From positions 18,848,001 through 18,912,000 of the forward strand of contig CM119379.1 of NCBI GenBank assembly GCA_051294905.1: a DNA stretch of 64,000 nt. The letters run 5' to 3'. Source of the DNA: Botryllus schlosseri. Taxonomy: Eukaryota. Shown here piece after piece: positions 9,711 through 58,261 of this stretch. Both the position numbers and the translations under genes were made by a program. Each line of letters starts with the position of its first letter. Within the stretch, counting starts at the first letter, position 1. The notes under the pieces were generated by a model. The model did no database searches. It was not told where the DNA came from and was given only the letters and a program-made list of their open reading frames with translations.

Positions 9711-9811
9711 AAGGAAAAGGAGAGATTTCTCTTCAATAAAAATCTATCGACCCAAGCTCTGTAAGTTATAGACATTGAGGTGTTAGTCGTACGGGAATTC
9801 CTACAAAGAAA

Positions 9812-10144
9812 ATGGGAAAGTCACCATTGCAATGCGACTGTGAGCTGAAAGAAAAATCTTCGGCGCTCCAAGCTCTGCCTTACGCGCCCGATGGGGGCGG
9901 ATTAGACGCGGTGGAAGAGGAATATGAAGTCAGTCGATTGCTGCACGAACTCATGGCTATTATTCCGAAGAAAAGTGAAAAGAGCCCGTCTGAGGCAGTT
10001 CGAGAAACCGATACCGTAGCCGGCGTTATCGACTACATACTGTATCTTGAAAAGCAAGTCGGGCACGAAACGACCGCCATGTTGAAGAGGAAGATGTGTC
10101 TCGAATTCCGCAGATTGCTACGACGTAAATCATCCGACGCATGA
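9812..10144 (+). CDS. Id: Id/emc-like HLH protein lacking a basic region (Id-A), divergent, 110 aa, apparently single exon
   Basis: Helix 1 EVSRLLHELMAIIP, loop, helix 2 ...VIDYILYLEKQV carrying the Id-type VIDYI signature. An acidic rather than basic stretch precedes helix 1. N-terminus MGKSP resembles Id-B MGKAISP. TATA upstream; AATAAA at 10915-10920. Confidence 0.8.
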   Translation: MGKSPLQCDCELKEKSSALQALPYAPDGGGLDAVEEEYEVSRLLHELMAIIPKKSEKSPSEAVRETDTVAGVIDYILYLEKQVGHETTAMLKRKMCLEFRRLLRRKSSDA

Positions 10145-17313: not shown

Positions 17314-19732
17314 AGTTTACGGCGTTTTCCTCGCAACAAATCAACGACACGGGTATTTTTATCGCTTAATTCAGCACCGTTTGCATCCATAAGTGCTACA
17401 AAACAACGCACAGGTGCGTATCAGCGCCTTATTGACGGCGGCGGCTGTGCTGACACCGCGTAACGACCGCCTGCGAAATGGAGATTGCTACTTTTAACTG
17501 CGTAATAAGTAAGAAATATTCGATAATGGCGATGAAGGGTCGATTGCGCTTAGCGTGGCGAGGATTTGCGGTCAGCCGAAATTGCTGCATAATGGCCTGG
17601 CGTGGAAGGCCGCAATTGTCAATATGTTTAAGCGTTCCGTATCGCCGTGATCACATTATAAAGAGATCGTGATAGACACTGATTTTCGTAGGTATAGACA
17701 ATTCGGCGGTGTGCCTGCGTTTAGCAAAAACTCTATTTGTGGTTGTGTGTGCGACATACATGGTTATTTTCGCACAAAAGAATGTGTGAAGTAGTTTGCG
17801 TATTTGGTAAAGAAATGTGAATGTCCCGAGAGCAGGGGTTGTCGAATTAGTCATCTCTGGTTCTTAAGTCACCAAGTCGAAGTCAAGATTTCTAAGTAAG
17901 TAAAAAAGTGAGTATTCAAGGCCTATTTTTTCCTACAAACTGAAAACTAGAAGTGGGAGTAGTCCAAAATCATAACCACTTGCAGTACACAAGCACTGCA
18001 ATTAGACAAAGATACTGGATTAATTCGCAAGAGTAGAAGTACATCGTTCGTTACAGACAACCTCCGCTCGCCGGATCAATACACGAAAAATAAATAGCAG
18101 AAAACTACTTCACCTCAATTTTTGCATGAATATTCCGGTAAACGTTTGCTTTCCTACTAGTGAAATACATGGGTGTTTTCTTGATCTAGTTTAAGTTCCA
18201 TGCACGCCATCAGGACAATCGTGATTTCGACATCACAATAAGACCGCGGCGTCAATGTCACTGAGGGGAATTATTGCCGCTGTTTCACTTTTCGTCGTTA
18301 TAGCTAAGGGCCGTATACGCTTGGACGTGCATTACTACACTGCAAGCCTTATGCATACGAAGTATACACGAAGAATTATGATTATCGACTAGCAACAGGA
18401 CTGCGTTTGGTAGATCATCCTCATCTACCTTTACATCATTATTAACGGTGTATTGTATTTTACACATTGATTTTGGGTTCATTTCCTTGGGGTCGTTCTT
18501 AGTGCCGGATTAAAACACACGGGAACCAATCTTGTGCCTTATATCATGTCAGTGGCATGACATGCAAAATCGCATTTACTTCCATCATCATCGATTTCGC
18601 CGTGTTTAACCCAGAGAATATTGCTGTAAGCATAAGCGGGGCTGTAGCCTACACTGTAAACTGTACAGTGTACTGTACATGTACAAGTACATGTCTACAT
18701 ACAGTGATGCATGGTTGACAAGAATTTGAGTATGGCGTAGCCTACATACCACAAATTGTGGGGATAACAATGCAATGACCCACGTTTTGTGGCGATAATT
18801 TCGCCTCGCCACTAGCATCAATCAACAACATTTTTTTCTGCCATAAATAACAACGCAACAGAAATATCTACACCTGGCTTTGATCAATGGAATATTCATA
18901 TTAAGTACATTGATATACGTGGACGTCGTACAGTACATGTAACACATTCCACGGCGGCAATGTCAGACAGAGTCCGCATTGCGGCAAGACCCGTGATCCA
19001 GTCTGGCTATCACATCAGGAATAGATGTTAGTGCGAATTTTATGGTTGAATGATATGATATGTTCCTGAACCTTGAAAACGCAGAGTGCGCCGTAAAAGG
19101 TTAGCCTAATCATCGATCGGTGATTTCGGAAGCAGGCCAAATACCGGACGCGAATCTGGCTGAAGGAAACATGTCAGACAAGTGATTTCGACGTTGTGTA
19201 GGGTTCGATTCTCCGGCGATTGGAATCACTTGAAGTCCAGGTGCGGGAATGTGCGGTTACACGCGTTGCGACTGTATTTAAAGAGTAAATTATCCCTATT
19301 CGCGCCCTACACTGACGAGAATGCGTGCAGAAGTATGTCCGCACAACGATGCCAAGTGCCTTCAAACTGTAACTCTGAATGTGACTTTATGACCCCTCAC
19401 AGCATGAAAAGGTGTAGCAAGTTCCAGTTGACATTACGTAGGAAATACATTTCGATAAAGAAAACAGGGCGCATTGCAGATCTGTTAGTGTCCTACTGAG
19501 TCACCAAAGTCTGATTTGACACAACATTTTGATTGTCTCAACATTCCAGAAGAATCACAGGAGATGCAGTAGATTTTACCTTTCACAACGTTGCAGTAAA
19601 TCGCGTTTACAAACTTGATACGAATCGATGACAAATGCTTGCCCGTAATCATTTGGTGAGTGACGATTTATGTGGTCTTTACCGACAACAGCGACGGAAC
19701 TCGAGCAATTCGAAACTCTATTGTTTCGTCAT

Positions 19733-19765
19733 AGACACAGGTGTCTCCCGGCGCCAGGTCGTCTG
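19733..19765 (+). promoter_or_regulatory. Composite E-box + BMP-responsive element, module 1
   Basis: AGACA-CAGGTG(19738-19743)-N6-GGCGCC(19750)-AGGTC-GTCTG. Confidence 0.7.
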
Positions 19766-20304
19766 CTAACTTTCGTTCGGTAAACTCACCGGTAGTTTGT
19801 TTTTCTTTTCATTTCGTTGGCTCCCATCACAACCGAATACCGCCGAACACTGAAATTGCCAATAAGCGATATACCGCAAACTGTGAGCGTTAATTTGACG
19901 TAGCAACGACCGAGTGGAAAATTTTAGCTTCCACTACACGCAAGGCAAGGTTCTGCGAAGCAAAGTCCGGATTACAACGGTGTAATGCGGGCGGATATAG
20001 TCCTATTGTTTCAATAAGGAGTACAAACACAGAGAGCAAGTATTTGTTTCCGGACGCCGCGCGCAGGTGTCGCAATTCACAGCGTAGAATTTACACAGGG
20101 CGCCGCTACTTTTGATTACGACAGGCCAATCCCATGTTGCGTCCTGAAGTTCAGTCAGGTAAGCGACTTTCTTTGACGCAATCAATGACGGCTGGGTCAC
20201 TCTGATACCGTTCTCTTGCTACGATTGAATCCAAATGCTTAATTCTACAATGTACCGTACATGGCCTTGACCGTTGACCAATGAGTCAATGACCGTGGAA
20301 AAAA

Positions 20305-20735
20305 ATGACAATTGGCTGTTGTTGTTTGTGGCATTCATGTTTTTTTTTTCGGCAACAATGGTCATTTACACCAGACCGATATTCTCTTCCATCATTCCGT
20401 ATCTGTTTGTTTGTGTGTGATATTCATGGTCTTTGTCGACTACTGCGGTCATGGTCATTTATACCAGGCCAATCTTCGTCATTTTTTATCCCGTATCTAC
20501 CGAGTTGTAGCACGGACCACTTCTAGGCTTTTATAAGACACCGCTTACACACGGATGAGATAGCGAAGAGGAGCCTAGTTAAACCTCCAACACTTTGGCA
20601 GGAGTTCTGGAGTCGGACTCGAATCCGCAACCCATTAGTGTTGCAGCTGTGGATAATTATACCACTTCACTATCTCGTCAATGCATTCCGTATCTGCCGA
20701 CTTGGTAGCACGGCCCATTTCTAGGCTTTTTTACG
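20305..20735 (-). mobile_element. tRNA-derived SINE family A: full copy with duplicated 3' tail plus an adjacent partial copy
   Basis: On the minus strand: A-box-like TAGTGAAGTGG, B-box-like GATTCGAGTCC, and the same body and (CAAA)/(AAC) tail as 33362-33620 and 41313-41592. Confidence 0.8.
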
Positions 20736-21426
20736 ACACTGGCCCACTGCCCACTCACATTTCCAACAACCCAGGTGGATTTTGACGTGTAGGTTGTTGT
20801 TGATGGCGTACCACCATACGTTGTGTCGTCGTTTCAATTTTAAAATTGATTTACATTTTCATCGGCTCCGGTCACCCTTGCGTGTCAAAGAGAATTCTTG
20901 GCGTTCACCAGATCGTGTTTTCTTAACAATTTCCATGCAGCCTTGACGCATAAGCGCACACACCAATTACGATAATGGCGAAAGTGGTTTTGTTTGGAGG
21001 AACATCGGCCGCGCGATACCAGTAAACAGTTTATGTCACGATAAACCTATAAATATATATCTCCGAAATTATTCGCGTAAAATCTGTTTTCGCGTGTTTA
21101 CACCCGACCCCGGGCGAACGGTGCTAAACGTAAACACGCGTCGACTTCTTACGAATCGCGCGATTAGCTCTACTAAATGATGGGATATTTATAATGTCTA
21201 ATTGGACCGCACTTTGTTACGGGAATACCGTAACCTTTCCCAATCGCCGTCGGCACCACGACATCGTTGAGCCTGCGAAAAGAAACGGCCGCTATCTCAG
21301 CCCGAATCAGACGCGCGTTTTCATTCCGTCGCCGCGTCACCTGTACTCACACTTCAGCCGGGCAAATTGATAAGGCTGATTGTTTATGCGAGCCTCATCT
21401 CAAACGGTCGTACATGCGATCGCATG

Positions 21427-21457
21427 AGACACAGGTGTCTCGGCGCCAGCCAGTCTG
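21427..21457 (+). promoter_or_regulatory. Composite E-box + BMP-responsive element, module 2
   Basis: AGACA-CAGGTG(21432-21437)-N4-GGCGCC(21442)-AGCCA-GTCTG. Confidence 0.7.
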
Positions 21458-22915
21458 ACCGAAAGACGCTCTCGCCTACATTATCCGCGCCTCTAACTTT
21501 CGCTCGATCAGGTGTAGCACGATTCGCAACACAAAGAAACAAAACCTCGAGAACGCGCCAGCAACAGGTGAGATGTTTATAAGTAAACCGACCTGGCGTC
21601 GCCAAGGTACTTAACACGTGTTTAACGCCTTATATACAAGTCACAATTCATTGATGTGATTTTCGGATCTCCGAGAGATAAACCGGTACAATCGTAGGAA
21701 TGTGGATTAAGCGTATGACGGAATTTCGTTATCAAACTAATTCCACGGGAGTAAGTCGGAGATTTCGACCGCATCACTGGCAATAAAGCCACGCAAACTC
21801 TTTTGGACATACACCCAAAAGAATAATACATTAATGAGGCGGATTCTCAGATTGTATTAATGCGGTATCGCTATCTTTGTATGCTCTATTTGTTGGCACG
21901 TGTGGGCCAGGTGTCCTGGCGTGTACTAATTTACAACTTCGCACAAATGACAGTGGTTGCGGATGGCTCGCTAATTTACGTCGTGCCTAAGCCGCAGACG
22001 TTGAGAAAAGTAGCACCTTTTTAAAAGATTTGGGGTGTCTATGTGTGGAAGTAATCTGGTTCATTTCAATATTTTTCGGTGGAGGATTTTTTTATGCATA
22101 AAGTAGAGAATTATGCGGCATTACAGTTGATAACATGCCCGGCAAACAATTTTGTCAAATTATGACAGCTATAATTTGCACCGAAATTATATCTCGATAC
22201 ATTGGCTACGTTACAATACGAGCCATGTTCTGGTAGCATGGCATTGGCTACAAAAGATTCATTTTTTGATAAAAATCATTTCATCATACAAAATAAAAGC
22301 TGGCAATTTTGTGTGACATTTACAGGTACAATCAAGACTGATTCGGTAGTATTTCAGCTGAGCGCCTGTTTGGTTATGGAGCTATAGCGAAAAATACAGC
22401 CAGGTTCACTTTGCCACTAGCGCTTGTTTAAAATTTATCATTTAGTTATCTCGAAGATAGTAACATAATTGCCCCTGCGGTTGTAGGCTAATAGGGGCGT
22501 GTTGCGTAGCGACGGAAATGCGATTTACCGAATTCTGCAGAGTCGATAAGATCGTGGCGGGTTTTAAACCTCAACTTTTTAATCATATTACAAGTTCCCA
22601 AATCTGCTCGTGTGCCCACGTTACCGAATTGGAGTCATGCGGATCTTTATAATATCGCGATTTAGCCTTTCCTGGTTGTATTATGAGCGACTGTCTGTTA
22701 TCGAGCGGTATTTACATGATCCTAGTCACCGCCTCGAAACGGCGAACTTGAAAGACGAAATGCGCCTTGACGGTTATTTGTTCACAAAAAAGAACCGCAA
22801 TAAAGTTACGCGGGGTGCAACGGCCCGTGAGATTCCAAGGCGTAATCTGTTTCATACCACCAGCTCTCGACAACGGCACGAACAAAGAAGATGCGCGAAG
22901 GGCCTGACTCGCGTG

Positions 22916-22941
22916 CAGGTGTCGAGGCGCCGCGGCGTCTG
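22916..22941 (+). promoter_or_regulatory. Composite E-box + BMP-responsive element, module 3
   Basis: CAGGTG-N4-GGCGCC(22926)-GCGGC-GTCTG. Confidence 0.7.
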
Positions 22942-23343
22942 CCGGCAAAATACACGGTTTCAATCCTGGCCAGTCGCGATAACTTTGAAGGCGCGATAAC
23001 TAAATCCGCGCATTCCATCGCACGGCGCCAGGAAACTCGAAACAAACAACGCACATTGTTCAAAACAATAATCGCCGCAAATCATAGCCGTCTTCATGTG
23101 ACTTTCTCAATCGTCCGACTTCTATTATCCCCCGACCGGCCTTTTGATGCCTGGATCCGTGTTGGCCTGCATCGACAGAATTACCCTAAGTGAATTACGT
23201 AATCGGATACGCTACGGCATTGAAATATTCAACCCCAAAACACATCCATATTTTACACAAAGGAACGCCGACTTTATGTGTGCGGTGTGAATTCGATTAT
23301 TCTGTTACGGTGTCCAATCAATTTGCCTTTGTCAAAGTATCTG

Positions 23344-23370
23344 CAGCTGGGTGCTGGCGACGTTGTGTCT
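23344..23370 (+). promoter_or_regulatory. Composite E-box + BMP-responsive element, module 4 (promoter-proximal)
   Basis: CAGCTG-N6-GGCGAC(23356)-GTTGT-GTCT, about 250 bp upstream of the Id-B ATG. Confidence 0.65.
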
Positions 23371-23525
23371 CTGGGAAGATTTGTTGGTGAATGGAAGTTT
23401 CGCCCGGCATCTCCCAAACAAGAAACGGCTAAGCCGAGTATCATAATGAAGAGACCGAGGGAGGTCTTCTCAAAACGAGAGAAACCAGGGGCGAACTCGT
23501 CTCTCATCAAACAAGACAGAATTTC

Positions 23526-23534
23526 TATATAAAA
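23526..23534 (+). promoter_or_regulatory. TATA box of Id-B
   Basis: TATATAAAA about 90 nt upstream of the ATG at 23623. Confidence 0.65.
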
Positions 23535-23622
23535 CCAAGGCGCGACTGCCCACGGGTCATAGTAAGTCGCAGTACCTGAAGTGTCGATATCTTTAAGCTG
23601 CACGTTTGGATTACACGGAAAC

Positions 23623-23940
23623 ATGGGCAAAGCAATCTCGCCAAGACCCATCTCTACAACCACTTGCAGTGAGTGTCTCACCAAGCTGTCACCTAGCTCG
23701 ATCAAAATCAGCAGGCAGGAAGGATTCGAAATTGGTGACTTGCTTCACAAATTGAAATCCGTGGTGCCGGCTGTATCTACGAAATCAACTGAGGAGTTGT
23801 CGTCTTTGGAGATAATGCAACACGCGATCGATTACATATACGACCTGCGTTCGACGTTGATAGAAGCGGAACAGGAAAGTTTCAGCGCTGCAAGCAATAC
23901 GGTTGCGACAGAGCATGTGACTGTCGCCAGTGTATGTTAG
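23623..23940 (+). CDS. Id: Id/emc HLH inhibitor of DNA binding (Id-B), 105 aa if unspliced
   Basis: N-terminus MGKAISPR...LSPSSIKISR resembles vertebrate ID2/ID3 (MKAxSPVR...LSxxSLxIxR). HLH LLHKLKSVVP...SSLEIMQHAIDYIYDL; no basic region. First ATG is 23623 (the ORF track starts at an upstream GTG). Confidence 0.93.
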   Translation: MGKAISPRPISTTTCSECLTKLSPSSIKISRQEGFEIGDLLHKLKSVVPAVSTKSTEELSSLEIMQHAIDYIYDLRSTLIEAEQESFSAASNTVATEHVTVASVC

Positions 23941-24344
23941 GCAGTCCGTTATGGAAAGGAAAACTGCCAGCAGCGGCCTGGTTATTTTCAAGGTGTGTTT
24001 AACTCCATTAAGTGTTACATAAGCGTGATAGTAATGTTACTTTTTACTTAGGTTACTCACACATATATCTAACACTGTTGCGATAACAGCTTAAATTTTG
24101 CTTCAGACTCGAGCCCGTAACGACCGACGCTAGGAAATGTGAACGCGGACCAAGTCGACCCGAATGCCCGGCGAAAAAGGACACCGGTCTTTATCTGATA
24201 TAAGGTTCGTAATATTTTCTGTACGCATCGTATCCACATTTTTTTTAACAAGTGTATGTATGCTGTGAACCTTCACGTGTATGGCACATTGTCACTGCTC
24301 TATTCGTATGTAGATGAAAAACTTATGCCTGTTTTATTTTACAG

Positions 24345-24494
24345 AATTTCAAAACTGCCGGTACCCTGAAGACTGAAAATAGCGTTCGCGTACATCATCA
24401 CCCTCAACGTCATGGGGAGATACGCTATCTGTTCTCATACCTTTCACGATTACACTTCGACCTATGTTTTTCGTGTTGTGAAATGTTGCTTTAA
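24345..24494 (+). CDS. Id: Candidate second exon of Id-B (alternative C-terminus NFKTAG...CEMLL*), or a 3'UTR exon
   Basis: Phase-0 donor AGT|GTATGT at 23932 and a strong acceptor TTTTATTTTACAG ending at 24344. Reading frame is open for 49 codons. Confidence 0.35.
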   Translation, partial: NFKTAGTLKTENSVRVHHHPQRHGEIRYLFSYLSRLHFDLCFSCCEMLL

Positions 24495-24929
24495 ATAAGA
24501 ATACTCTGAAATGTTACGTTGCATACTCAATGGGAGTGTTGTTTGGTTAGGGCTTCTGTAATGTCAGCGATTGTGGGAGTTCGTGATAATTTATGACAGG
24601 GGCACTGTCGGTTAATGTGGCGCAACACCGTTAGACGTAAATAACAGCCGCGTTGTAACGAGCTATACATGTGTACAGCTGTTTGCCATTGTCAGATGTT
24701 TTACGTGATTGTCGCAGCTGCGAAATTCGCCCACTTCAGCCTCGCTCCCGCGCGGCGTTAACTGTGTTTACCGCTTTTCGCGTTAGACGAATGCTCAATT
24801 GCTCAAACACTGGCGAAACGCGTTGCAACAAGTTCTAGCCTGGTTATGACGTGGACCACCTTTCACCGCGTGAATTTACAGTCGTATGCAGGTTTAACCG
24901 CACAGTATGCAAACTCGGCGTTGTTGGCC

Positions 24930-24956
24930 CAGGTGCGATTAGGCGCCAGACAGTCC
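24930..24956 (+). promoter_or_regulatory. Composite E-box + near-consensus BRE, module 5
   Basis: CAGGTG-N6-GGCGCC(24942)-AGACA-GTCC. One mismatch to GTCT; the spacer itself contains AGAC. Confidence 0.5.
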
Positions 24957-25228
24957 GCACCCTGAGGTCACAGGATTTGCCCGACATGCGTGCTTTATAA
25001 ATTGAGAGCTACGCTACTTCACACACGCAACGGTGTTAGACACTGGTACATTTCCGCATTGGATGCAGGACGCGTAAATATGTGGATTTTGACGCATCGC
25101 TTATGAGAGCTATCTGTAATCGACGTGCTGCTGTATTTGCACATATACAATTGTACAAATGTACATGCTTTTATTCGATATCTCCTGAGCTAAGCTGGAC
25201 ACAAGTACAGCTAAGAAAAGATGTGACG

Positions 25229-25262
25229 CAGGTGCGTTGGCGGCCTTGGCGCCAGATAGTCT
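25229..25262 (+). promoter_or_regulatory. Composite E-box + BMP-responsive element, module 6
   Basis: CAGGTG-N4-GGCGGC-CTT-GGCGCC(25248)-AGATA-GTCT. Confidence 0.65.
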
Positions 25263-26754
25263 CATAAGTTCGCATAGTTACAGCAGAAATCGACGTCTTA
25301 CGCGAAATGATTTCATTGCGGCTTGGTGAAAACTTCAAAATCCTATTTGATAAATTCCAATATTCGGTGACGGTTTTCGTATCCTATAAACATCCATGGG
25401 ATTATCCGATTATCTGCTTAGCCTGTTCACATAAGAAAGAATCATTTGAACTGACAAATGGTCACTGGTCAGTGGTCAGTTGTGCTTTCCAATCCCATGC
25501 CACTCTTGAGCCACTATCTGGGTTATGTCCGGAATACTTCGGTGAGGAAGTTGACCGTGATGGTAAATTCAAGATTATAAACTCTTTTGCTGCCAATCGC
25601 GTTGGATGCTCATAACAGCCCATATATGACATCCTGTATCCATCCCTGGCCCATTATACACAAGGTTGGGCCATATCACCATATGTATGGCTCAGTCGTG
25701 ATTCCCAAATTATGTGACTTCATAATATTTTGCTAGCACATACGTATGCCGACATAGCGCTGGTTGTGGTAATATTTCTTGCTTAACCCGAGGGTTTGGG
25801 TCCAAGTACAGCGCACCGGAACTATGGGTGGGTGGGTGATTAGATCAGGGGTTATCTCACAAGCGGTTGAAAGTGCTAGGAGAAAATCCTATTTTTCACG
25901 TCACAGAATTCTGAAGCTTGACCCCCCGCCTGACGAGTAGAAAAAGTTTGGATTACAGAATTATTTGAACAAAATCTAACTATACCCGTCCCTTTCAGAC
26001 GTACAACAATTGAGATCGACATTGAAATTTCGTAATTATATTCATGATATGGTCTCCTTCGTCATGATATTCCAGAACAAAACTCGCAAAGTGCGTTGCA
26101 AAGTACGGGCCGACTGTCCGTGAAGATTTGATTACAAAATTCCTTACGGGAAAGCGTAATCGATTCGCACAAGCCTTAGCTGTAGGCGACGTTCCAGTCT
26201 TCACTCTTTAGGAAATACAGGCGCATCTCATATGACATAAAGTAGGGGTCTAATGGATCATCCGATACTAAAATCGACTAAAATGACAGTGAATTAATCC
26301 TGAAATAATAATTCCTAATCGCTCACGTCGGTTTTGATCACACTACTTATACTCAGAACGCAAATAATAAAAAAGTGTACGTTACGACAATTACATTCGC
26401 TTATGCCCCTCCGAACAGCTGTGTCATATAAATCATGTTCAAAGCCACGGCCCTATTCATTAGCAGATATCAACACGGATAAAATGCGTAATCATAATAT
26501 CCTGTTGTGTGAAAAGGTGTACGAACATTGAATAATGAACATAGAAAGGAAACGCAAAATGTGGGTGCTTTTAGATTACTGTCGGGCGGTCCTGATTTGC
26601 GTTAGTTTCGTAAACATGCCGATAATACACTCTTGAGCAAACAATTCATCGAATTGTAAAGGGTTACCAAAAAGAGCAAGACACCGACAATGGTTCACGG
26701 CGTGGAAGTTCGCTAAGACTAATAAGAAAACTAAACTTTTCGGTAGAGCGTCAG

Positions 26755-26780
26755 CAGACACAGCGGCGTCCCGCCACCTG
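26755..26780 (-). promoter_or_regulatory. Composite E-box + BMP-responsive element, module 7 (reverse strand)
   Basis: Minus strand reads CAGGTG-GCGG-GACGCC-GCTGT-GTCTG (plus strand CAGAC ACAGC GGCGTC CCGC CACCTG). Confidence 0.65.
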
Positions 26781-27957
26781 GTAAAATTCGGTTATCACCT
26801 GAACAGGATTTGATCGAATGGAAAATACCTCATCGCATGTCGATAGCCGAGAGATTACAGTCAGGCGCGTGACAGATCATTCTGAATCACCTTGGTTTTA
26901 ATTGACGGAATTAGCGCCGCTTACATTTGAGATTACAATTATCCAACAAATCAGCTCCCTTGGCATTGTACTGATGAGATCTTCGGAGAGCTAAAAAACG
27001 CAAAAGCGGAACATTGCAGCGCGAACTACGCGCGCTATACTAACGTCACCGCATCACCGCAAATATGGACGAATGCGTGACTATGAAGATATGTTTTAAA
27101 GATATAGCTGCGACGGGTGTTTCATAATACGCAATAAATCGTTAACAAAGAAAACCCAGTGATGTGTGATCTGTTTTCATTTATGTACAACGACACCCTA
27201 TGTCCGATCAGCGGTCTCTTCTAATGGTTCGAAAATTGGCGATGATTTATAGTTGACTGTGGTTGGTAACGCTAAGAAGCGTGTGCTACTAAAGCTGCAA
27301 TTATTGTTATGTGAATAATCGAGCTATATCATTGCGTTCCGCGAACTGCGGTGATATCACTGCTTAAATATCCGAGCCAAGGAAGCGTTATTTGAAACTC
27401 TATATACGCCTAATTCCGCGCTCAATCGGAATAACAAACAAGTTTGCTTAGGTGCGCGCGGCTTTGCTGTTTGCTAGTAATATTTGCAAATTTCCTTTTA
27501 GGTATTGGTATTTGCAATTATACTAATTGTGAAAGGCGGTCGAGATGAAAGTAGGCAAAGTGCAGTTGCCCCAGACTTGGACCTGCGAATTCAACCTTTC
27601 GACCCGTCGAAATGGGGAGATAATAAGCGTTGTTGCTTCCCTAATGAGTTGCTCTCCACAAATCATTGCGATAAGGCTAAATTCATATGTTTGATACCGA
27701 AATCTTTCGGACAGATGATGCCTCAAACTTGATCACTGTATAGGAAAGACTCTGGAACAGGTTGCAAATCGGAATAGGTTCGCCGTATCTGGACGTTAGC
27801 AGCGTAGACTTTATGAACCATCATGAACCCGATCGATATTTCGCACTCGTGCTGCATGCATGTAAATGGGGATGGGCGCACAAAAAATGTGAAGTCATTT
27901 ATGTGACTCGCGTACAGGCCGGTGCGTCTGTTGCGCGCCACGTCTACAGGGAATATT

Positions 27958-28020
27958 TGTGGGAGGGTGGGAAGGACGGCTCGGGCAGCTGCCGGCCTGC
28001 GCTCGCTGAAGTTTCCCACG
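27958..28020. promoter_or_regulatory. Candidate Notch/CSL (Su(H)/RBPJ) + E-box enhancer
   Basis: GTGGGAA at 27967-27973 and TTCCCACG at 28013-28020 in inverted orientation, CAGCTG at 27986-27991 between them, plus TGTGGGAG at 27958, all in a CpG-rich patch. Confidence 0.45.
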
Positions 28021-38000: not shown

Positions 38001-38298
38001 ATTATTATGTCAGTCTGGCTTTGAGTATGGTCTCACTTGGTGCAATTTCAGTCATGAATATTCGAAAGTTGAAGTGAAGCATCACTAAATAGACATTTAG
38101 ACGTCAAACATTGGCGCGTGGCATTGTGCGTCAGCAGTTACAGATTGAATGCAAAAGGTATGAAATTCGTAGATTGATTTTGTCTCTATCGGATTGCGTC
38201 GTGAGGGTATACAGTACCATCTAACGGCGATTGAGATAAATAACGTAGAGCATTCCACAGCCGTGCCGAAATGTATACAATACATGTCTACGTAGAAT

Positions 38299-39935: not shown

Positions 39936-41151
39936 GACCAGCGTTATCAATGTGCCAGGAGGCAAGAAAGCAAATTTTCCGATTTCGAGTCAATTTCAAG
40001 TCATCACATATATTAAGTTTGGAATGTTTGATTTTAATAATGGGTGGATGTTGCATATACAATATACATGCATAGCTGCATATATAGGGTTGTCCGCCAC
40101 GAAATAGCCAAACTTGGTGCCATGTCTTCTTTAAAACTACCGAAATGATTTGAATATCGGCGGCTCTTTATGCAAATGGGCGAGAATTCTATGTCCACAA
40201 GGTGGGCTCTATTCATAATATCATGAGAGACGGAATATAATTCAACGTAAACGACACTGATTGGCTGAAATGCTGCATGAACACTATAAAGGCAGCACCG
40301 GCTTCGTGTTTGGATACTTAGGTATAGTTTGTTAGCAATTTTAGTCGAAATCGCCAAGAAATGGCGACTTTAGGTCTGATACACTTTAACTGAATGTTCT
40401 TTTCGCACGTTGGATTGGTGTTATCGTGACAGTTAAGGTCATTATGGCGACAGTTAAGAGCATGCTAGAGTTGTTTATTGTCGCTATTGGCGGAATTAAA
40501 CAAATCGAACATGCAAAACGAAATGCTTTTCATACTACGAGTCCGAGTCAACCCAAGTCATTTCAGGGCAATGACTTGAGTCAAGTCAGGTTAAGTCACA
40601 CTAACACCGGAAATCACACCTTAACGATGTCGCTGGGCGCTTGATGCGTCATGGTTCTAAAACTGTGGCGCCTATGCTGAAGCCTATACTGGGGTTAATC
40701 AAACCAATATCAATCCCACTGCTCTGGAATCATTAGGATAGTGTGCCGCCACAAATTCTCAGGTGTGCCACGAATCTGTTTGTAATTTTTAAAAAATAAC
40801 TCCATAAGTATATAAAACAAAACTGCTTCTTAGTTGATAAATAAGCACACGCGACCATTACAATGAACACAATTATGGCATTGCCGATCACTAGGTGCTA
40901 TGCGTCGAATATAGTCTTTAATTCGTTCCACACTCTTGGTGAATCAACTCATAAACAAAATTTACTCCGCAAAATATGAGCACACTGCCTGGACTTCAGC
41001 TTGTAGTTGGTTAGCCCATCTGGAGGTAATGAATCAAGCAATCTGTCTGCGAAGAACAGCTCATTGATATACGGAATGTCCTGTTTTTAAGCGGTGTTTC
41101 GGCAGATGAGATATGGTGGTCTCATATCAAATCCTATATCATGATAGGTAC

Positions 41152-57297: not shown

Positions 57298-58261
57298 TTA
57301 GCGACGGGATGAATTCGAATGGAAATCTCCTGGCACCGATGTATCCTGAAACGGAATTGGCGTGTTAAAACACACTGCACAGTCGACTACGTATGTATAT
57401 AGCAACGCAGTATAAGTATGTCACAACTAAATAAATCGCACTGATGCTTTATCAGCATCGGCGCCGTGTATAATATCGAAATTTTACGTTTGCATTGAAT
57501 AATTGTAGCTGTATTTCGAGATTTGGCGTTAACAAAAGGCGTTATGGGTTGGTGTGTTAGTTACAGAGAGCCGATTATCTTTATGTACAAATTTTAAACG
57601 TGTAAAAAACGAGCAATGCTCATTACTCACCGTCGGCGCAAGTTCCTGATTTCTCTTGTTATCGAGTTGCGCGAACGGGGCTCTGCTTTTCGTGCAGTGG
57701 GCCGACGACGAAATGGAAGATGATGAAATCACAGTGTCCGAATGTTCGAACTCTACCGGCATTTTACTTTCCAACATATCGTGCAAATCGCGTATGTAGT
57801 CGATCGCTCCCAAGACCACGTCCAGTGACGAGACTCGTTGCGGTTTTGATTGCGATAAGGCCGGAATTACCTCCTGTAACTTTCGGTATAGCGTCCTGCC
57901 AAAGACAATACAACTTCTAATAGAAATTCCTGTACGTTGATCTATTTCCAAATTTCAGCAGTCAGATCACAAGACAACACCAGGGCACGCATACAAGAAA
58001 CACAGCATAGACAGACTGCTATCTACAAATTTACCTCAACTCAGCGGTGTCTCCGTTGCCGTCGTCGGGTACGCTTGAAGACTGATTTCTTTGGGACATC
58101 CTCGCCCTGTAATCCCCGCAAAATTCATCTCGCAGTGCACGCAAGACTTTTGTCGACTGCGAATTTATCGGGCCGTCACTTTTAAAGCACACGGTCGACA
58201 GCCTAGACCCGTTCATATGCCGAGGTGAAAATAACAATGTATCTTTTCCTGCTTTCACCAT
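57298..58261 (-). CDS. Id: Id/emc HLH protein (Id-C), three coding exons: 58261-58035, 57895-57631, 57345-57298
   Basis: Intron 1 (58034-57896, GTAAAT..TTTGGCAG) joins ...DTAELR-TLYRKLQEVIP...SSLDVVLGAIDYIRDL in frame. Intron 2 (57630-57346, GTGAGT..TTTCAG, phase 0) follows D-box-like RAPFAQLDN. Last exon DTSVPGDFHSNSSRR*. N-terminus MVKA...FSPR. ATTAAA about 200 nt past the stop. Confidence 0.88.

Follow-up and report, generated by a model that had tools for sequence, protein, structure and literature searches.

Introduction

Does the E-box that accompanies the bone morphogenetic protein (BMP) response elements of a tunicate Id gene belong to those elements, and if it does, which factor reads it? 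The question is raised by a 64,000-nucleotide stretch of Botryllus schlosseri DNA (assembly GCA_051294905.1, contig CM119379.1, forward-strand positions 18,848,001 to 18,912,000; hereafter the window, with position 1 its first letter), in which the gene Id-B is surrounded by repeated copies of one composite sequence: an E-box (CAGSTG) and, downstream of it on the same strand, a BMP response element (BRE) of the form GRCGNC-N5-GTCT. BRE clusters at Id genes are textbook knowledge. The composite of E-box and BRE at tunicate Id genes, by its fixed spacing, is apparently an undescribed, rigid enhancer grammar. Our reading, to which we assign a probability of roughly 55%, is that these sites are tripartite BREs on which Smad1/5-Smad4 would act together with a factor bound to the neighbouring E-box, most probably a basic helix-loop-helix (bHLH) dimer that contains an E-protein, under feedback from Id.

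Composite sites in the window

The original prediction located exact BREs at 19750, 21442, 22926, 23356 and 25248 (+) and at 26756-26770 (-), together with a one-mismatch BRE at 24942 (GTCC in place of GTCT), and reported a same-strand CAGSTG upstream of every copy at spacers of 6, 4, 4, 6, 6, 13 and 4 nt. A pattern search reproduced all of this, including the extra GGCGGC 4 nt past the E-box in the 13-nt case and a CAGGTG-N4-GGCGAC without GTCT at 21343-21328 (-), so that six exact BREs and one one-mismatch copy are found around Id-B. The further claim that no exact BRE occurs elsewhere in the window was wrong, as two more were found at 38091-38105 (-) and 40363-40377 (+); these two lack an E-box, have linkers rich in A and T, lie distant from Id-B and are probably chance matches.

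The clustering is far above that seen in dinucleotide-shuffled sequence. Exact matches to GRCGNC-N5-GTCT number 8 in the 64-kb window against 0.41-0.44 expected (pattern search; dinucleotide-preserving shuffles), and 6 of them fall in the local 7.5-kb region around Id-B, for which the shuffles gave 0.08. Pairs of E-box and GC box (CAGSTG-N4-6-GRCGNC) occur 8 times, every one within 19738-26780, compared with 0.15 per shuffled window; when the local 7.5 kb were shuffled with dinucleotides preserved, the expectation for these 8 pairs fell to 0.01. The complete three-box composite was found 5 times in the window against an expectation of 0.000 (zero in 300 shuffles). A compositional artefact is ruled out by the local shuffles. 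The original observation is confirmed, and the pattern is stronger than first claimed.

An origin of the pattern in chance, base composition, or a duplicated repeat or transposon carrying the motif could draw on a 33-nt stretch common to two of the sites (A and B, described below; 88% identity) and on a slightly raised local GC content (0.44-0.46). The local shuffles speak against it, however, as does the repeat search, in which no longer repeat family covered the composite sites and the flanks differed from site to site; moreover, the orthologous positions in other species are occupied while their flanks have diverged. We give such an origin next to no weight, and chance and repeat origin of the sites are refuted by these data.

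Every composite site lies outside the Id-B transcript, in the promoter and flanks of the gene, and an Rfam scan of the window returned zero matches; on these two grounds an RNA-level feature was ruled out. As a separate observation, CAGSTG E-boxes as such are about five-fold enriched at 19500-27000 (25 strand-counts versus 4.6 in shuffles), a conserved second E-box at 26796-26801 among them, and this excess is larger than the composites' share.

Conservation at the Styela clava orthologue

The orthologous locus of Styela clava (L001) contains seven exact BREs in 21 kb, and 7 of 7 have CAGSTG 4 or 6 nt upstream. In a blastn comparison with the window, collinear non-coding similarity was found only at and around the composite sites, and the window sites, designated A to G, pair one to one with those of S. 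clava in the same order, on the same strand and with the same spacing class (A N6, B N4, C N4, D N6, E N6, F N4, G N4). Over six site pairs the E-box was identical at 36 of 36 positions, the GC box at 34 of 36 and GTCT at 23 of 24, as compared with identities of 53% in the E-box/GC spacer, 57% in the linker, and 49% and 43% in the 15-nt flanks. The length of the linker between GC box and GTCT is always 5 nt.

Farthest upstream, ~3.8 kb from the transcription start site (TSS), site A (19738..19764, +) reads CAGGTG-N6-GGCGCC-N5-GTCT(G); in its S. clava counterpart (L001 5043) E-box, N6 and GTCTG are unchanged and the GC box is GGTGCC. Site B (21432..21456, +; ~2.1 kb upstream of the TSS; CAGGTG-N4-GGCGCC-N5-GTCT(G)), in which an AGAC/GTCT pair flanks and overlaps the E-box, is identical to L001 7360-7384 at 24 of 25 bases. 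The opposite strand carries a partial copy, site B' (21328..21343, -; ~2.2 kb upstream of the TSS), which reads CAGGTG-N4-GGCGAC and lacks the GTCT at N5; since S. clava keeps its E-box but not its GC box, B' probably does not amount to a complete composite. Site C (22916..22940, +; ~0.63 kb upstream of the TSS) has the formula CAGGTG-N4-GGCGCC-N5-GTCT(G), and its orthologue at L001 8671 has identical boxes with diverged spacers. The proximal promoter, ~0.2 kb upstream of the TSS, carries site D (23344..23370, +; CAGCTG-N6-GGCGAC-N5-GTCT), whose CAGCTG form, N6 spacing and GGCGAC are all kept in three species: in the window, at L001 9679 and at L004 512, the latter a locus from a third, stolidobranch-type species.

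Beyond the 3' end of the gene, at ~0.3 kb, stands the one-mismatch copy, site E (24930..24956, +; TTGGCC-CAGGTG-N6-GGCGCC-N5-GTCC). Its counterparts in S. clava (L001 11692) and at L004 3028 have an exact GTCT, and its TTGGCC flank and N6 spacing are kept at L004 and held in common with a Ciona site (L005 16635). Site F (25229..25262, +; ~0.6 kb beyond the 3' end; CAGGTG-N4-GGCGGC-N3-GGCGCC-N5-GTCT) is the 13-nt case, its E-box lying 13 nt from the GC box of the BRE and 4 nt from the extra GC box; the S. clava orthologue (L001 12091) is a simple N4 composite. Site G (26756..26780, -; ~2.1 kb beyond the 3' end; CAGGTG-N4-GACGCC-N5-GTCT(G)) is in reverse orientation, and its orthologue (L001 13824-13800) is on the minus strand too.

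Beside site G, a conserved block (26794..26825; 85% identity to L001 13839-13871 by blastn) starts with the second E-box, CACCTG (26796-26801), placed 25/26 nt ahead of the GC box in both the window and S. clava. Another conserved non-coding block (21560..21630; blastn, 73% identity to L001 7546-7616) contains a double GC box that forms a palindrome (TGGCGTCGCCA); its minus strand reads GGCGAC-N5-GTCG, and it may be a degenerate extra Smad element. A block at 27924-27975, conserved with L001 15543-15593 and ~3.3 kb beyond the 3' end of Id-B, holds GCGTCTG and GTCT motifs and may represent a further Smad-type element. At L001 19987-20515, ~10 kb downstream of the Id gene, S. clava has two extra composites with no counterpart in the window, one of them with GTCT directly abutting the GC box; these may serve another gene or be lineage-specific.

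The composite at other tunicate Id loci

The survey of composites covered Id loci, with cyprinid id3 as the one vertebrate comparator. In Clavelina lepadiformis the composite is present at 2 of 2 BREs of one Id paralogue (L008) and at 3 of 4 of a second (L011), and it is present at 4 of 5 BREs of a tunicate locus (L010) orthologous to that second paralogue. At the Ciona Id.a/Id.b pair the exact BREs number two: a composite (L005) 6.3 kb downstream of the gene, and a TGACGTCA-containing match with no E-box (L006). In all, the composite is found at Id loci of at least five tunicates other than B. schlosseri. A separate paralogue locus (L003) has one BRE and no E-box.

When the 31 exact BREs of 8 tunicate Id loci were pooled, 24 had a same-strand E-box at N4 (11) or N6 (13), and among the 31 none had an E-box at N5 and none an inverted CACCTG. 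At a chance rate of 0.0014 per BRE, the binomial P of this coupling is 6.5e-63; counted by orthologous groups only, coupling is seen in 11 of 14 (P = 1e-29). Over 30 sites from six species the E-box-to-GC spacer is 4 or 6 nt and never 5, with the class conserved at orthologous sites, and the corresponding centre distances are 10 or 12 bp from E-box to GC box and 20 or 22 bp from E-box to GTCT. A fixed spacing had been predicted, and it is indeed tight, but the range given for it (N4-6) was too loose, since N5 is never used. The E-box itself is CAGGTG at 27 of the 30 sites and CAGCTG at 3, flanked by Y at -2, V (almost never T) at -1, Y at +1 and S at +2.

The expectation that the element would be conserved at orthologous Id loci was thus borne out: coupling of E-box and BRE is kept across tunicates with fixed orientation and tight spacing. 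At the cyprinid id3 locus (L009), CAGSTG was found within 40 nt of none of the four exact BREs, and because the BREs of this single vertebrate comparator are uncoupled, E-box coupling looks tunicate-specific. As judged from the aligned sequences, the comparison shows strong purifying selection on the three boxes and their spacing across all three ascidian orders, with spacers and flanks left to drift.

The BMP/Smad side of the element

As originally proposed, the GRCGNC-N5-GTCT copies match the Smad1/5-Smad4 BRE consensus, and the gene on which they cluster belongs to the Id family by its Pfam HLH match and its homology to S. clava LOC120345717. GRCGNC-N5-GTCT is a characterised pSmad1/5-Smad4 site (PMC8569018; PMC4605309) and corresponds to the motif called 'ID-type' at human ID1-4 (PMC11907993). 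BMP2 causes ectopic expression of Phallusia Id.b and Id.c throughout the epidermis, and DMH1 abolishes ventral epidermal Id.b and lowers Id.c (PMC9238270). The identity of the BREs, taken together with BMP control of Phallusia Id.b and Id.c, makes direct BMP control of Id-B the natural reading, and the Id-B sites are best read as a homotypic cluster of predicted direct Smad1/5-Smad4 BMP response elements. Of the 6 exact window sites around Id-B, 4 have a G directly after GTCT, as do 17 of the 24 pooled BREs with an N4/N6 E-box; because most sites end in GTCTG, participation of Schnurri is possible.

The factor reading the E-box

In the mechanism that we favour, each element would consist of a Smad1/5 site (the GC box) and a Smad4 site (GTCT) separated by 5 bp and joined in one orientation to a CAGSTG that precedes the GC box by exactly 4 or 6 bp, and the Smad1/5-Smad4 complex, possibly with Schnurri, would bind the BRE productively only when a second factor occupies the neighbouring E-box. 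This partner would most likely be an E-protein-containing bHLH dimer, either maternal Tcf3 alone or Tcf3 with a proneural class II partner, such that BMP plus free E-protein would switch Id on and Id protein, which titrates E-proteins, would then withdraw that input. Each element would in this way limit itself, by the negative feedback of the original prediction, whose interpretation is supported in part. The presence of one precisely placed and oriented E-box per BRE argues for cooperative assembly over loose co-occurrence.

E-protein/class II bHLH dimers accept CAGGTG and CAGCTG, and Snail and ZEB need CAGGTG or CAGGTA. Both forms of the class A E-box core occur here in the same architecture (27 + 3 of 30 sites), and a bHLH reader is favoured because site D retains CAGCTG, with the N6 architecture unchanged, in three species. 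In Ciona, knockdown of Id.a itself raises Id.a and knockdown of Neurog abolishes it (PMC7693978), and Smad1/5/9 and Tcf3 are both abundant maternal transcripts (bioRxiv 10.64898/2026.07.29.740271). The negative autoregulation and Neurog dependence of Id.a and the maternal supply of Tcf3 and Smad1/5/9 likewise favour a bHLH reader.

The BREs may be genuine and the E-box nevertheless be read by a zinc-finger protein (Snail, Scratch or ZEB/SIP1), acting either as a short-range repressor that vetoes BMP in particular tissues or as a Smad-interacting cofactor, an arrangement that we consider somewhat unlikely. It accounts well for CAGGTG at 27 of 30 sites with a mostly pyrimidine +1 and a -1 that is almost never T, and strict orientation would be natural for a binder that is monomeric and asymmetric. 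ZEB2/SIP1 was originally found as a protein that interacts with Smads, and the SNAIL1-SMAD3/4 complex uses paired sites consisting of an E-box and a Smad-binding element (SBE). Yet the strict CAGGTG/CAGGTA core, although present at those 27 sites, is absent from the conserved promoter site D, which has CAGCTG in the same architecture in three species, and CAGCTG is a poor Snail or ZEB site; nor would a repressor require one precisely spaced site per BRE. The flank pattern (Y, V, CAGGTG, Y, S) is not decisive between E-protein and Snail/ZEB. Expression data fall on both sides: ectopic Id.b under BMP2 in Phallusia is limited to the epidermis (PMC9238270), a point for the zinc-finger reader, while the lateral border cells of the Ciona neural plate express Id.b together with Snai (bioRxiv 10.1101/2023.05.24.542044), which carries mild weight against a Snail veto. 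Because BMP2-induced ectopic Id.b stays in the epidermis, some factor gates BMP competence.

The upstream box might also not be an E-box in function: it could form part of a tunicate-specific extended Smad footprint (through an additional MH1 contact, for instance, or a zinc finger of the Schnurri type), or be the site of another tunicate factor, its likeness to an E-box being coincidental. The N4/N6-only rule, which fits no known bHLH-Smad geometry, lends itself to this explanation, and the E-box of sites A and B overlaps GTCT and is preceded by AGAC (SBE-like), but such overlapping SBEs are found at only 2 of 8 sites. Furthermore, the hexamer is invariantly CAGSTG in ~30 sites of 6 species, and CAGGTG differs from the known motifs of Smad MH1 domains (GTCT, GGCGC-type; PMC4605309; PMC11907993). 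We judge an extended Smad footprint improbable.

A T-box site (AGGTGT), here for Tbx2/3 as a BMP-induced ventral factor, had been named as an alternative in the original prediction. AGGTGT is found in window sites A-C, and site E reads AGGTGTGAA in S. clava and L004; the extension is not conserved, however, for the window's own site E reads CAGGTGCG and the Ciona site CAGGTGGC, and ~20 of 30 sites are without AGGTGT while CAGSTG is invariant. With CAGSTG conserved at orthologous sites and AGGTGT not, the T-box alternative fails, and we regard it as very improbable. A T-box half site (AGGTGTGA-type) was rejected on the same evidence, AGGTGT occurring in a subset of sites and not being conserved at orthologous positions.

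Several observations weigh against tripartite BREs read by an E-protein dimer. Id-B may not be the orthologue of the BMP-responsive Id.b and Id.c of Phallusia, nor of the Ciona paralogues; the single composite of Ciona, moreover, lies 6.3 kb away on the downstream side of the gene. The E-box is CAGGTG followed by a pyrimidine at 27 of 30 sites, which fits a Snail-type consensus too, and the strict orientation would be most natural for a zinc finger or a bHLH heterodimer, not an E-protein homodimer. The vertebrate ID-type BRE alone is BMP-sensitive in human reporters (PMC11907993), and because it confers sensitivity by itself an obligatory partner is not a general BRE property. Lastly, the effect of Daughterless on the fly Id gene emc, once read as transcriptional control, is now ascribed to protein stabilisation (PMC5915177), and this precedent was for that reason not counted as support. 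The stronger form of the proposal, an obligatory three-part tunicate BRE in which an E-protein dimer and a Smad trimer would cooperate by direct, geometry-dependent contact as a self-limiting AND gate for Id, is one that we put forward tentatively.

The Id-B gene and its neighbours

Id-B is an Id (group D HLH) gene: it is small, lacks a basic region, is Id-like, and is expressed and spliced. Its TSS is marked by 213 template-switch-oligo reads that start at 23559/23560, and a TATA-like box (CTATATAAAA; 23524..23533, +) lies ~30 nt ahead of these capped 5' ends. The transcript (23560..24640, +) was delineated by RNA-seq depth and by GT..AG joints at 23990/24105 and 24202/24343 in 4 runs, giving exons at ~23560-23990, 24105-24202 and 24343-~24640. 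The coding sequence (23623..23940, +), which encodes 105 aa with an HLH and no basic region, begins at ATG 23623 within an open reading frame (ORF) at 23581-23940 and ends within exon 1, so that both introns (23991-24104 and 24203-24342) are in the 3' untranslated region (3'UTR). The protein matches Pfam HLH with E 3.2e-05, covering profile positions 16-53 only; its closest named relative is S. clava LOC120345717 (65% identity), and more distant homologues include a Ciona 'DNA-binding protein inhibitor ID-2' and fish ID-3.

With the stop codon (23938-23940) in exon 1 and introns in the 3'UTR, exon junctions are expected downstream of the stop, and the Id-B mRNA could be a short-lived message sensitive to nonsense-mediated decay. 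The RNA reads of run X23 have ~50% alternative bases at 23653, 23659, 23684, 23982, 24160 and 24164, which suggests heterozygous or strain single-nucleotide polymorphisms.

Two more Id-like HLH ORFs, at 9779-10141 (+) and 57532-57954 (-), flank Id-B and make up with it a three-gene Id cluster. The window scan found no E-box/BRE composite near either of them, and for this reason deployment of the BMP element looks paralogue-specific.

Comparison with known systems

There is a precedent for E-proteins as DNA-bound Smad partners in the work of Yoon et al. from 2011, in which E2A/HEB reportedly act as SMAD2/3-FOXH1 cofactors. That system differs from the tunicate one in that it belongs to the Nodal/Activin branch, uses a different motif, has no fixed 4/6-bp BRE spacing and is not at Id genes. 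The SNAIL1-SMAD3/4 and ZEB/SIP1-Smad complexes on pairs of E-box and SBE are alike in having CAGGTG by Smad sites and physical interaction with Smads, but they involve TGF-beta Smads, are mostly repressive and follow no defined N4/N6 rule; a further difference is the conserved CAGCTG at tunicate site D, which argues against a zinc-finger reader.

The closest likeness in the BRE itself is to the vertebrate ID-type BREs (GGCGCC-N5-GTCTG; ID1/2/3/4), which have the same Smad1/5 GC box and Smad4 GTCT with a 5-bp linker (PMC11907993, PMC8569018, PMC4605309), and which also share the Id target genes, the presence of multiple copies in the promoter and flanking enhancers of each locus, and the frequent terminal G. 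Unlike these, which have no obligatory E-box, the tunicate element is tripartite with its E-box fixed at N4/N6. The consensus and the strict 5-bp linker are found again in the Dpp silencer of Drosophila (GRCGNC-N5-GTCTG, bound by Mad/Medea/Schnurri) and the activating element (PMC4605309; PMC9508838), and the GTCTG of most tunicate sites is compatible with Schnurri recruitment; the silencer, however, represses and needs no E-box, whereas the tunicate element sits on a gene that is BMP-activated in ascidians (PMC9238270). Cooperation of bHLH E-boxes with GGCGCC-type BMP elements is known from the HAMP (hepcidin) promoter with ATOH8, although the sites there stand apart, follow no reported rule of rigid spacing or orientation and form no repeated composite unit (PMC4232863). 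A rigid composite with DNA-guided spacing is exemplified by the 'Coordinator' motif, a TWIST1 E-box plus a homeodomain site (bioRxiv 10.1101/2023.05.29.541540), in which the partner is a homeodomain and not a Smad complex and which is a vertebrate mesenchyme element.

The original prediction had taken the spaced E-box/BRE grammar to be undescribed, and our search of the literature agrees: in open-access texts on ascidian cis-regulation (PMC7710358), on Id.b, on the GRCGNC consensus and on Smad composite motifs, no description was found of an E-box locked to a BRE at 4 or 6 bp.

Implications

The specificity of short, degenerate Smad motifs is an open problem in BMP signalling, and fixed-spacing enhancer grammar is rare and debated. 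The Id-B element offers a natural test case of ~25 bp, with three boxes, strict orientation and a quantised N4/N6 spacer, repeated 7-8 times at one gene, and its grammar is kept across tunicate orders whose other non-coding DNA does not align. If the partner is an E-protein, negative feedback from BMP to Id would be hard-wired into the response element; if it is Snail or ZEB, the element would carry a built-in tissue veto of BMP responsiveness. With either partner, it would be a lineage-specific elaboration of an element usually called invariant from flies to humans. Should the obligatory three-part element prove true, it would be among the very few rigid grammars conserved over all ascidian orders, and tunicate BMP targets might use this grammar genome-wide.

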